Of a stretch of 64,000 nucleotides of DNA, positions 2,621-5,132 are shown piece after piece. Both the position numbers and the translations under genes were made by a program. The stretch is taken from sequence record ON287376.1. The stretch is one strand, 5' to 3'. Every line of letters starts with the position of its first letter. The stretch's first letter is position 1. The notes under the pieces were generated by a model that did not search any database, was not told the DNA's origin, and saw nothing but the letters and a program-made list of their open reading frames with translations.

Positions 2621-2766
2621 TTTAGATCTTTTTTTACGCAACAAGTTTAAGTATGTAGAAGCTGCATCAAGTAATCATTTAGTTCAATTAACTCCAGGGT
2701 CGATTGTCGGTAACTAAGTGAGATTCAGCTACAAGCGGGGATGGATCCCCACTAAGTATTGGAGAG

Positions 2767-2863
2767 CTTTAAGGGTACGATCTCAATCGTCCGGGTTGTG
2801 GAACAACTTCCGCACACTAGTGCGTTGGTTTAGGGTTCGACTCCCTACCGGAATGCCTTAAAG
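2767..2863 (+). ncRNA. tRNA-like cloverleaf embedded in a longer stem
   Basis: T arm TAGGG-TTCGACT-CCCTA (2831-2847); closing TCCGG/CCGGA; arms GTTGT-GGA-ACAAC and CGCAC-ACTA-GTGCG; outer stem CTTTAAGG/CCTTAAAG. Confidence 0.6.
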
Positions 2864-2934
2864 GTAGCGCATGATAAATGCGAGCAACTAACACGAGGCG
2901 ACATTACGCGCCTACTCCAATCAAAACGAATTAC

Positions 2935-3017
2935 GGGGGAGTTCCAGAGTGGTCAAATGGAGCAGACTGTAAATCTGTTGTCTTCGGACTTCGGTGGTTC
3001 GAATCCGCCCTCCCCCA
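2935..3017 (+). tRNA. trnY: tRNA-Tyr(GTA), canonical class II, CCA not encoded
   Basis: GGGGGAG/CTCCCCC acceptor, GCAGA-CTGTAAA-TCTGT anticodon arm, GTC-TTCG-GAC variable arm, GGTGG-TTCGAAT-CCGCC T arm, A73. Confidence 0.95.
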
Positions 3018-3025
3018 AGAATAAT

Positions 3026-3121
3026 GCGACGATTAGCTCAGTTGGATAGAGCGCGGTTATTGCCCCCTGGGCAAACATCGGAAACCGAGGCCCCGTGTTC
3101 AAATCACGGATCTGTCGCCCA
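3026..3121 (+). tRNA. Atypical tRNA: Arg-like D arm, 24-nt anticodon loop, G-1:C73, bulged acceptor, CCA encoded
   Basis: GCGAC-GAT/ATC-T-GTCGC + CCA; D arm GCTC-AGTTGGATA-GAGC; CGGTT/AACCG stem; T arm CCGTG-TTCAAAT-CACGG. Confidence 0.75.
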
Positions 3122-3127
3122 AACAAT

Positions 3128-3206
3128 GAACCGAGTAGCTCAACTGAATAGAGCACCGTCCTGCTAAGACGGAGGTTAGAGGTTTGAATCCTTTCTCTGG
3201 TTCCCA
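3128..3206 (+). tRNA. Atypical tRNA with GCT (Ser) anticodon on a class I body; G-1:C73, bulged acceptor, CCA encoded
   Basis: GAACC-GAG/CTC-T-GGTTC + CCA; CCGTC-CTGCTAA-GACGG anticodon arm; 5-nt variable loop; T arm AGAGG-TTTGAAT-CCTTT. Confidence 0.8.
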
Positions 3207-3212
3207 AACAAC

Positions 3213-3376
3213 GACACTGATCTCAAGAAGATCGGCAGCCTTACCCAACCGTGTCGCGGCGATCGCCAGCAATCGGTATTTAGTGCACGGTACGTAGACA
3301 AGCCTTTGAGCGAAGTTCCGCGTCCCGAGCCGCCGGCAGCCCATAAGCCTCAGTGAAATTCTGAGGGGTGTCACCA
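3213..3376 (+). ncRNA. 164-nt RNA with tRNA-like acceptor/T domain (6+6 bp) ending ACCA
   Basis: GACACT/GGTGTC + ACCA; CCTCAG-TGAAATT-CTGAGG; GATC-TCAAGAA-GATC 5' hairpin; internal ACCGTG/CACGGT helix. Confidence 0.6.
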
Positions 3377-3381
3377 AAGAT

Positions 3382-3445
3382 GTCCTCATTGCAGAGGGAG
3401 GTTGATTGTAGTCAGCCTGTTGTGAAACTAATCTGCAGTGGGGAC
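3382..3445 (+). ncRNA. Structured RNA element (14-bp closing helix with inner hairpin)
   Basis: GTCCTCATTGCAGA/TCTGCAGTGGGGAC, 14 bp including G-U pairs; inner GGTTGAT-TGTA-GTCAGCC. Confidence 0.5.
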
Positions 3446-3466
3446 GCCTTCCCTTTCTAAAGTTTT

Positions 3467-3552
3467 ATCGAGATAGTCTACTTAAACCTAGTGAGGAATT
3501 CGACGGCGGATACGTCCGTAAGACTGCGTAGGTTCGATCCCTACTCTCGATC
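3467..3552 (+). ncRNA. tRNA-like RNA with 23-nt D loop and 4-nt anticodon loop
   Basis: Perfect ATCGAGA/TCTCGAT acceptor; T8 A9; GTC/GAC D stem; GCGGA-TACG-TCCGT; GTAGG-TTCGATC-CCTAC T arm. Confidence 0.7.
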
Positions 3553-3568
3553 CGATTTAAAAGAACAA

Positions 3569-3696
3569 TGACGCCTGCACGTAAAAAGCAAACTGCGCCA
3601 GCTGGGCGCGGTGGGGGCTAAGTGCCAGCAACTGTTGTGGCGAGATCGCGGCAACAGCACCGGAAAGCCAGGTGCGATTCCTGGGGGCGTCACCCA
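3569..3696 (+). ncRNA. 128-nt tRNA-like RNA (8-bp acceptor + 5-bp T stem), ends C-CCA
   Basis: TGACGCCT/GGGCGTCA + CCCA; CCAGG-TGCGATT-CCTGG; internal hairpins ACTGCGCC/GGCGCGGT and CTGTTG...CAACAG. Confidence 0.65.
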
Positions 3697-3698
3697 AT

Positions 3699-3776
3699 TA
3701 GGTACGTAAGTCTCAAGTGGCCGCATTCATCTGCCCGCTGCCTAAAGACTTTGTGGAATGGATTCCGCGTACCTAA
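3699..3776 (+). ncRNA. tRNA-sized structured RNA with acceptor/T-like stack
   Basis: TAGGTAC/GTACCTA 7 bp abutting GTGGA-ATGGAT-TCCGC; AAGTCT/AGACTT inner helix. Confidence 0.45.
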
Positions 3777-3811
3777 AAACCAGTAAGTTAAACTAATAGG
3801 ACGATTCTACG

Positions 3812-4321: not shown

Positions 4322-4413
4322 AGAACACTTGATGTGCTGGTAAAGGTTTAGTCACCTTTTTTAAGATCGTCCGCTAATGATTGATACTAGCGCATCTTTT
4401 TTATTGAAGAATC

Positions 4414-4638
4414 CCGCCGATCGGGTAGCGTACGTCTGGCGTAGTCATTACTCTAATTGAGTGGGGCTACGAGGGGTTTACCAGTCGATCGGTGGTACCA
4501 AACTCTGAGCAGGTTGCAGCCGGCTGGAGTAAATAGGGGACTGCGAGTCCCCAGGTGCATAAAGGCCCAGAAATGGCGCCCGGCACAAGACGCAGCGCGT
4601 CGGTATCGAGAGGGGCTTCGGCCCCTCTCTTTATTTTC
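4414..4638 (+). ncRNA. Candidate orphan structured RNA ending in an intrinsic terminator
   Basis: CCGCCGATCG/CGATCGGTGG 10-bp helix enclosing the GTAGTC/GGCTAC hairpin; GGGGACT-GCG-AGTCCCC; GACGC-AGC-GCGTC; no RBS-supported ORF. Confidence 0.5.
4608..4637 (+). terminator. Rho-independent terminator
   Basis: GAGAGGGGC-TTCG-GCCCCTCTC followed by TTTATTTT. Confidence 0.85.
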
Positions 4639-4655: not shown

Positions 4656-5132
4656 ATGAAATTCATACTGGCATTGAATCCTAAAGATCCGGCAATTAAA
4701 GGTTACGAATCAGATCTTCTTAAGATGATCCAGATTATGGATAAACGAGAAGCTACTTACTGGAAAGAGTCAGCTAACTTAGATATCCTTAGTCGTGAGA
4801 TGGAGTGTAAAACCTTAGAGGAACGTTGGGTAGACGATACTCAAATACTAATGCTCCTTGTGAGGGGTAATCCTGTAGGTTTCGTTGAGTACACGACCGC
4901 AGTAGTTAACGCTAGTTCTAAGTGGCTTTCTATATGTTATCTGTACGTACAACGAGAGTACAGAGGGTTTGGATATGGATCTGCACTAGTTGATCAAGTA
5001 AGGAACTTTGCCAAGATCCAACAAGTAGATCAATTGTCACTTTCAGTCAAGTCAAGAAATAAACGAGCCATTAAGTTTTACAAGAGATACGGTTTCTCGG
5101 AACAGACTAAGTACTTCTGTATGAAACCTTAA
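4656..5132 (+). CDS. GNAT family acetyltransferase
   Basis: LYVQREYRGFGYGSAL acetyl-CoA motif A; SVKSRNKRAIKFYKRYGF motif B. Confidence 0.9.
   Translation: MKFILALNPKDPAIKGYESDLLKMIQIMDKREATYWKESANLDILSREMECKTLEERWVDDTQILMLLVRGNPVGFVEYTTAVVNASSKWLSICYLYVQREYRGFGYGSALVDQVRNFAKIQQVDQLSLSVKSRNKRAIKFYKRYGFSEQTKYFCMKP

Follow-up and report, generated by a model that had tools for sequence, protein, structure and literature searches.

Which amino acid, if any, is carried by a tRNA that has the anticodon of a serine tRNA and the body of an arginine tRNA? The question is raised by a gene of Serratia phage vB_SmaM-Kodama (ON287376.1), a lytic jumbo phage of 275 kb that belongs to the genus Moabitevirus. 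The window analyzed here is the first 64 kb (64,000 nucleotides, nt) of this record, and window coordinates are identical to record coordinates. At positions 3128-3206 the window contains a non-canonical tRNA gene with anticodon GCU, hereafter the GCU tRNA. Our analysis shows that this gene is a real, selectively maintained tRNA and not a chance similarity. As judged from its sequence, we tentatively favor, at somewhat less than an even chance, a dual-identity tRNA which would be charged by the arginyl-tRNA synthetase (ArgRS) of the host and would act as a weak missense decoder of the serine codons AGC and AGU (AGY). Eight Moabitevirus genomes, together with alleles from three public sequencing runs (a silage metagenome and the coded runs X7 and X10), were used for comparison within the genus. 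Public collections, with bacterial genomes taken as one per species, were also scanned for sequences in which a class-I anticodon arm C-N-GCU-AA comes after an Arg-type D arm. The scan matched 4 viral contigs, 45 bacterial genome loci and 103 metagenome contigs (about 150 in all), and 107 unique copies could be analyzed, including 66 intact cloverleaves, nearly all of which have A73 or G73 and ordinary seven-pair acceptors. The same pattern with the anticodons TCT, CCT or ACT provided 76 intact Arg-type controls.

The gene was called as a tRNA with anticodon gct by ARAGORN, and the Rfam model RF00005 matched positions 3129-3202 with 47.5 bits (gathering score 29, E-value 9e-9 in 1.2 kb); the alleles of phages Moabite and 2050HW scored 41.4 bits. 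The minimum free energy (MFE) fold is a cloverleaf with an acceptor helix of eight pairs (G-1:C73 and pairs 1-7), a bulged U3198 and a single-stranded CCA end. A sequence-only reading of this stretch had described a seven-nucleotide anticodon loop CT-GCT-AA, a variable loop of only 5 nt, an Arg-like D loop with A20 and a T loop with TTT, and all of these were found in place (Table 1). The unusual T loop is matched by A19, so that the tertiary pair 19:56 is A:U and not G:C in Kodama; G19:C56 was found in the Totoro-type allele, and the A19:U56 variant was also found in one Klebsiella phage tRNA-Arg. The G-1:C73 pair, which the same reading had taken as present, is indeed encoded (G at 3128, C73 at 3203), but the acceptor is less straightforward than was supposed: the 3' strand has one surplus base, G-1:C73 and the seven acceptor pairs can form only with the U3198 bulge, and the alternative register used by Rfam contains two mismatches.

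Outside the genus, the best BLAST matches of the gene (85 nt) were overwhelmingly annotated phage tRNA-Arg genes with ACG or TCT anticodons, and the alignment revealed a common D loop (A-N-Y-U-G-R-A-U-A) and a common anticodon loop (CU-NCU-AA). The body is thus, on alignment, of Arg-type ancestry. With phage and bacterial tRNA-Arg (UCU, CCU, ACG) it shares the A20-U20a D arm, the CU-NCU-AA loop, the 5-nt variable loop and the T-stem pairs, and it differs from them in G34, C73, G-1:C73, the bulge and an unstable U33, which is kept in 76 of 76 controls. A BLAST search of the same gene against E. coli genomes gave no match, and an exact-pattern scan of IMG/VR for close relatives identified none outside Moabitevirus.

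According to published identity rules (PMC9976931), seryl-tRNA synthetase (SerRS) requires a large variable arm, G73 and G2:C71, with C11:G24 also in the rules; ArgRS uses A20, C35, U36 or G36 and A73 or G73, position 34 being outside the set; and histidyl-tRNA synthetase (HisRS) uses G-1:C73. The GCU tRNA has a 5-nt variable loop, C73 and A2:U71, and of the SerRS elements C11:G24 alone is present, which bears out the earlier claim that SerRS should not charge this body. The ArgRS elements A20 (3148), C35 (3164) and U36 (3165), also claimed earlier, are all present under these rules. Departures from an ArgRS substrate are C73 at 3203, where every one of the 76 controls has A73 or G73, and the anticodon itself, which reads AGC and AGU and not arginine codons. 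In the proposed mechanism, an Arg-type class-I body with A20, C35 and U36 would be joined to a wobble G, and GCU would pair with the serine codons AGC and AGU. With SerRS recognition excluded, aminoacylation would most probably be carried out by host ArgRS, and the Arg-charged tRNA would act as a weak Ser-to-Arg missense decoder. We infer the steps of charging, processing site, EF-Tu binding, ribosomal decoding and benefit to the phage from sequence features.

A profile search of the 275-kb genome found neither the class-II synthetase core (PF00587, tRNA-synt_2b) nor ArgRS (PF00750). A phage-encoded synthetase serylating or arginylating the GCU tRNA was rejected on this basis, and therefore any charging would be by host enzymes. 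The T-stem pairs A49:U65, G50:U64 and A51:U63 are common among ordinary phage tRNA-Arg; therefore nothing suggests exclusion from EF-Tu, and the idea that weak EF-Tu pairs in the T stem mark a non-ribosomal tRNA was dismissed. A search for RNA sequencing data from infected cells identified no run, and an RNA-labelled wastewater metagenome run covered only 2700-3032 and two sampled positions, not 3128-3206; its depth on the tRNA-Tyr gene came mostly from short, divergent contigs.

The acceptor leaves room for another enzyme. RNase P may cut one base early, leaving G-1 paired with C73, and HisRS could then charge the tRNA in place of ArgRS, which would result in histidine at AGY codons or in mere binding of HisRS. 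As in bacterial tRNA-His, G-1 is encoded opposite C73 directly before CCA and closes an eight-pair acceptor helix in the MFE fold, and transplantation of G-1:C73 is sufficient for recognition of minihelices by HisRS (PMC9976931). C73 is rare in this body type (0 of 76 controls, 3 of 66 intact GCU copies), and the feature is common to the neighboring tRNA-like paralogue X described below. However, the anticodon is GCU and the GUG determinants of tRNA-His are absent, the D loop is Arg-type, A20, C35 and U36 favor ArgRS, the bulge breaks the 8-bp helix, and the true tRNA-His of Erwinia phage ChrisDB is dissimilar in body. A histidine acceptor is considered very unlikely.

The fold of the gene has been kept through considerable change. 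Moabite and Kodama alleles differ at 8 of 79 positions (33, two variable-loop bases, 49, 65, 56, 57 and the bulge), and the Totoro-type allele with an intact acceptor from the silage metagenome shows 8 differences from Kodama (16; 19/56; 49/65; 53/61; 57). All differences among intact alleles are in loops, in the bulge or compensatory (49:65, 53:61, 19:56); no stem pair is broken, three pairs are changed on both sides, and 96.5% of pair cells are paired across the five distinct alleles. When substitutions were placed at random in a simulation, the share of trials in which all 22 pairs survived was 1% for 8 changes and 0.07% for 14. Divergence between Kodama and Moabite is 10% in the GCU gene and 5.7% at four-fold degenerate sites genome-wide, and therefore the fold was kept through much change and the cluster is a variable or exchange-prone place. 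G34, C35, U36, A37 and A38 are invariant in all alleles, which carries little weight on such a short tree, and the 5' acceptor strand is invariant in seven of eight phages and replaced in Totoro. Stem-breaking substitutions at a neutral rate, as expected of a tRNA pseudogene, were not seen: intact alleles contain no broken pair at about 10% divergence, and the only broken copy is the chimera of Totoro.

One position of the gene behaves differently from all others. Base 33 is T in Kodama, Haymo, Totoro and the silage relative, C in Moabite, 2050HW, BUCT660, vB_ParM-25 and runs X7 and X10, and A in Yaphecito, the aligned tRNA-array region of which is otherwise identical to that of Moabite. It is the sole three-state position of the GCU gene. 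The same instability was found in the wider family, where C33 or A33 occurs in 27 of 66 (41%) intact GCU copies and in 0 of 76 intact controls; after clustering at 85% identity, non-U33 was present in 24 of 53 GCU clusters and 0 of 16 control clusters (p = 6e-4), and four clusters were polymorphic at this position. In Bradyrhizobium-like genomes, orthologous chromosomal loci retain the tRNA with flanks diverged to 70-78% identity. Elsewhere a bulged acceptor was found in 1 and C73 in 3 of the 66 intact copies, and only the Moabitevirus genes combine G-1:C73 with a bulge. Literature searches turned up no account of Arg-type tRNAs with GCU, and the set, with its lost U33 constraint, is undescribed so far as these searches go. 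One locus (L180) additionally has a class-I tRNA with anticodon ACU.

Could the gene be a decaying remnant, that is, a former tRNA-Arg (UCU or CCU) which suffered a wobble-base mutation and now lies functionless in an unstable cluster? The cluster is in flux, as 13 tRNAs in ChrisDB compare with two in Moabiteviruses, tRNA-Tyr is without its anticodon in Haymo and interrupted by an HNH endonuclease gene in Totoro, and the GCU copy of Totoro is chimeric. Structurally broken copies are also frequent elsewhere, at 38% of GCU-type copies and 5% of controls. On the other hand, G34 is in all alleles, which then diverged by about 10% with loop or compensatory changes only, a pattern not expected of a dead gene. 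Bases other than U at position 33 are, moreover, concentrated among the intact copies (27/66) and not among the broken ones (5/41), which argues against simple decay. A functionless remnant is therefore held to be distinctly unlikely.

The meaning of AGY in phage genes was examined by comparison with ChrisDB. In 49 Kodama-ChrisDB orthologue pairs, the residue opposite an AGY codon is Ser in 21% of columns, Arg in 6% and His in 1.6%; opposite TCN codons it is Ser in 22%. Recoding of AGY as Arg or His was rejected, as AGY aligns with Ser in the same way as TCN does and codon changes between Kodama and Moabite showed nothing unusual. AGY is thus Ser in the phage genes; therefore there is no reassignment, and insertion of Arg or His would be true mistranslation, phage proteins included. 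The AGY share of Ser codons is 33-34% in Kodama and Moabite and 32% in ChrisDB with its canonical Ser tRNA. AGY avoidance, expected if the tRNA were a weapon against host mRNAs, was not seen in the codon counts of Kodama or Moabite.

These counts also bear on whether the GCU tRNA may be an ordinary Ser decoder, which would receive serine in some unconventional way and would serve AGY codons in place of the canonical Ser(GCU) tRNA that related phages carry. Low AGU use is expected of a GC-rich host, and AGU use in Kodama is far above this expectation (AGT is 18% of Ser codons). Moreover, the syntenic array of ChrisDB contains a canonical tRNA-Ser(gct), which suggests that the anticodon is in demand. 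This 90-nt class-II gene resembles the Kodama gene in its loop CU-GCU-AA and its array position; by contrast, the Kodama tRNA is class I with another D arm, another acceptor and C73. The bodies are unrelated, and for this reason the idea that the Kodama gene arose from such a Ser(GCU) tRNA when the variable arm was lost was rejected. Serylation would also have to proceed without the long variable arm, G73 and G2:C71 (PMC9976931), and no class-II synthetase core was found in the phage. A serine decoder is extremely unlikely.

For the missense reading put forward from the sequence alone, the identity logic, the Arg-type body and the meaning of AGY as Ser hold, and several observations weigh against an efficient decoder. 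C73 is a non-Arg discriminator, and the bulged acceptor may hinder ArgRS, HisRS or EF-Tu. AGT and AGC make up 33% of Kodama Ser codons (about 1,800 codons) with no avoidance, and AGY is Ser in the phage genes; therefore efficient misreading would damage the phage's own proteins. The presence of C33 or A33 in close relatives speaks against a strong decoder; under the favored reading it would represent a tuning down of decoding in sister phages, and the loss can equally mean that decoding is not selected. In Totoro, most of X and the 3' portion of tRNA-Tyr have given way to an HNH endonuclease gene, so that tRNA-Tyr is disrupted. The 5' acceptor strand of X has been joined there to the GCU gene, and the resulting chimera does not adopt a cloverleaf; the GCU gene is therefore not essential, at least for forming plaques.

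The strongest argument that the acceptor end serves something besides codon reading comes from X, the tRNA-like paralogue, which has 5' and 3' flanking motifs in common with the GCU gene. Its acceptor follows the same design, with a G-1:C73 closing pair, four pairs, a bulged U, three pairs and CCA, and differs from that of the GCU gene in three pairs, each on both strands. Where the anticodon loop would be, X has a 24-nt insert that includes a 6-bp hairpin, and it was called by neither ARAGORN nor Rfam. X was found only in Kodama and in the silage-metagenome relative, where it has no listed differences. Two neighbors thus carry the same odd, compensated acceptor and one of them is unable to decode, from which it follows that the acceptor may have been selected for a non-decoding role.

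On this evidence, the GCU tRNA may be a non-decoding tRNA-like RNA, in which the acceptor and elbow architecture (G-1:C73, bulge, CCA and L-shape) is selected and the anticodon is incidental. It would then be a decoy, sponge or substrate for a tRNA-targeting defence nuclease, a nucleotidyltransferase, an aminoacyl-tRNA synthetase or RNase P in array processing. The sequence-only reading had likewise named a decoy, of the Ser anticodon, as its alternative to decoding. Besides X, several points agree with such a role: position 33, where decoding depends most on a U, is the only one with three states among close relatives, Kodama does not avoid AGY, and further tRNA-like elements lie in the array, including one that hardly varies within the genus. 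Phage tRNAs are, in addition, known as counter-measures to tRNA-targeting defences (PMC10264068, PMC11555353). However, no partner factor was identified, the T-stem pairs are those of a normal elongator tRNA-Arg, and the wider GCU family has ordinary acceptors, Arg-type discriminators and ochre-type tRNA partners, which looks like decoding; the invariance of anticodon bases 34-38 also points that way with little weight. A non-decoding role is a possibility on the doubtful side, and it is nearly as likely as the missense reading.

The ochre-type partners were found next to GCU tRNAs of the wider family. At 6 of 129 loci, from different phyla (L182, L194, L196, L210, L219 and L252), an intact class-II Leu-type tRNA stands beside the GCU tRNA, with D arm TGGCGGAAT..GGTAGACGC, A73, CCA and the ochre-reading anticodon loop CU-UUA-AA. 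The two genes are 3-8 nt apart in two loci, and the order in the viral contig L329, L194 and L219 is Leu-type(UUA), a 135-amino-acid (aa) open reading frame (ORF) and Arg-type(GCU); Pfam gave no match for this conserved ORF. None of 117 control tRNA-Arg(TCT) loci contained a Leu-type(UUA) gene, though 22 tRNA-Leu(TAA) calls were made there, and 10 Leu-type(UUA) genes matched the pattern in IMG/VR. The surroundings of the cassettes include IS1-like and IS1595 transposases, a terminase and a Cro/C1 repressor. Recoding at cassette-bearing loci was rejected, as their terminase and transposase ORFs have no in-frame stops, and therefore nothing suggests a private genetic code. The leucyl-tRNA synthetase ignores the anticodon and ArgRS does not use position 34; both odd tRNAs would be charged by enzymes indifferent to the altered base, and the pair therefore has the look of a mistranslation cassette.

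IS1-like or IS1595 transposase genes often adjoin GCU tRNAs, typically 45-200 nt downstream on the same strand, and IS1595-type genes were beside 13 of 67 intact GCU-type loci (the count of that analysis). The transposases belong to two different families, and there are orthologous loci that lack them; a functional partnership with IS1595-type elements was therefore rejected in favor of a mobile-DNA context. Taken together, the Arg-type GCU tRNAs may form a mobile class in which position 33 switches among U, C and A, with the Kodama gene as its case in a cultured phage, and, in some phage- and IS-associated loci, they might form together with Leu-type(UUA) a programmed module (AGY as Arg, UAA as Leu) used by mobile elements against host translation or to manipulate it. 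We regard this extension as rather unlikely. Kodama itself has no Leu-type(UUA) gene.

The GCU gene, tRNA-Tyr, X and a further tRNA-like element lie in a 1.2-kb intergenic stretch (2621-3811), and tRNA-Tyr and the GCU tRNA are the only two tRNAs detected by Rfam in the whole Kodama genome. The coordinates of all features are listed in Table 1.

Table 1. Features of the GCU tRNA gene, its array in the Kodama window and the Leu-type(UUA) loci
Feature	Position	Strand	Evidence or remark
Non-canonical class-I tRNA gene, anticodon GCU, G-1 to CCA	3128..3206	+	ARAGORN, Rfam, MFE cloverleaf, 8 Moabitevirus genomes
5' acceptor strand: G-1 (3128) and positions 1-7 (AACCGAG)	3128..3135	+	pairs with 3195-3203 in MFE fold
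D loop AACTGAATA: A19 at 3147 (not G19), A20 at 3148, U20a at 3149	3142..3150	+	sequence; phage tRNA-Arg loop type
Anticodon stem	3156-3160/3168-3172	+	sequence
Anticodon loop C32 U33 G34 C35 U36 A37 A38; anticodon 3163-3165; U33 at 3162	3161..3167	+	sequence
Variable loop AGGTT, 5 nt (CCGTT in Moabite): class I, no SerRS arm	3173..3177	+	sequence
T arm: stem AGAGG/CCTTT, loop TTTGAAT (3183-3189), U56 at 3185	3178..3194	+	sequence, compensatory changes
3' acceptor strand CTC-T-GGTT, bulged U3198 (A in Moabite), C73 at 3203, CCA 3204-3206	3195..3206	+	sequence, fold
tRNA-like paralogue X, Arg-type D arm, normal T arm	3026..3121	+	sequence, fold; BLAST neighbors tRNA-Arg
Canonical class-II tRNA-Tyr(GTA)	2935..3017	+	ARAGORN, Rfam; only other Rfam-detectable tRNA of Kodama
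Conserved tRNA-like element, head of array	2788..2855	+	sub-threshold mascRNA-like Rfam match, 30 bits
Leu-type(UUA) + Arg-type(GCU) locus L196	2311-2483		
Leu-type(UUA) + Arg-type(GCU) locus L210	3164-3325		
Leu-type(UUA) + Arg-type(GCU) locus L194	5837-6480		
Leu-type(UUA) + Arg-type(GCU) locus L219	4392-5035		
Leu-type(UUA) + Arg-type(GCU) locus L252	117-733		
Leu-type(UUA) + Arg-type(GCU) locus L182	531-617		
Leu-type(UUA) + Arg-type(GCU) locus L329	1602-2232		viral contig

The element at the head of the array is the core of a block of about 185 nt (2748-2933), in which a tRNA-like T arm and acceptor are followed by two hairpins. The block is nearly invariant in all eight Moabitevirus genomes, far above the adjoining tRNAs; 12 nt of its T arm are missing in Moabite and Yaphecito, and a counterpart is recognizable in ChrisDB (L029, about 3637-3767). 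Downstream of the GCU tRNA, T-arm-like hairpins (GTAGGTTCGATCCCTAC; CCAGGTGCGATTCCTGG) with matching terminal helices occur at 3468-3556 and 3560-3700, and the Rfam tRNA model gave no match to these two stretches at E <= 1. A GNAT-family acetyltransferase gene (4656-5132) is located 1.4 kb downstream of the array. The GNAT fold is common to tRNA-dependent aminoacyl transferases and to toxins that acetylate aminoacyl-tRNA.

The tRNA cluster is a hot spot for both exchange and decay. Thirteen tRNAs were found at the syntenic place in ChrisDB, including the canonical tRNA-Ser(gct), and two are kept in Moabiteviruses; a 169-aa coding sequence follows the ChrisDB array, and one of the same size is at the same position in Kodama. 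The tRNA-Tyr of the genus exists as two very different alleles, the Kodama type and the Moabite type. In Haymo it has lost 8 nt, anticodon included (L002, 1835-1911), and in Totoro the inserted HNH endonuclease gene splits it in the D arm (L004, 1911-2516). Two unannotated tRNA-like genes were found in the ChrisDB array: one at L029 4290-4385 (record 4340-4435; 39.6 bits), with a CTCATAA loop and a long extra arm, and one at L029 3451-3505 (record 3501-3555), a 55-nt partial match of 29.9 bits. Because of these two, non-canonical tRNA-like genes are not confined to Moabitevirus.

Among known systems, the closest in kind are the tRNA-ProX genes (ProA, ProT and ProN) of Streptomyces and Kitasatospora, which are natural dual-identity mistranslating tRNAs that host enzymes can charge despite the foreign anticodon (PMC10404621, PMC11415595). 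As in tRNA-ProX, the body identity of the Kodama tRNA comes from one amino acid and the anticodon from another. U33 is replaced in both cases, by A33 in these validated natural mistranslators (PMC11415595, PMC10404621) and by C33 or A33 in the sister alleles of Kodama and in 41% of intact GCU copies. The two differ in that ProX is proline-type, with A34 anticodons and a co-encoded ProRSx, whereas the Kodama tRNA is Arg-type with GCU and G-1:C73 plus a bulge, in a lytic jumbo phage genome with no tRNA-synt_2b or ArgRS match; mistranslation has been seen only for ProX. Alloacceptor anticodon shifts, or tRNA remolding, are known from mitochondria and eukaryotic nuclear genomes (PMC3923123, PMC4783518). 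Like remolded tRNAs, the GCU tRNA is closer to another acceptor family than to the tRNAs whose anticodon it shares. Remolded tRNAs, however, end correctly charged, as the anticodon determines identity, whereas the shift here is from Arg to Ser, and SerRS ignores the anticodon and needs the arm that is missing.

Deliberate mistranslation by a dedicated tRNA in bacteria has so far been documented for essentially one family, tRNA-ProX. If the GCU tRNA does carry Arg or His, a lytic phage would for the first time be seen to keep a missense tRNA, and the wider set would indicate that mobile DNA gives rise to dual-identity tRNAs repeatedly. If it is a non-decoding decoy, it would be a new player in the conflict between phages and tRNA-targeting defences. 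In either case the pipeline label 'tRNA-Ser' is almost certainly wrong for charging, which affects analyses of phage codon usage and tRNA complements. The conserved phage case, the loss of U33 and the link to an ochre-type tRNA make programmed mistranslation by mobile elements directly testable.

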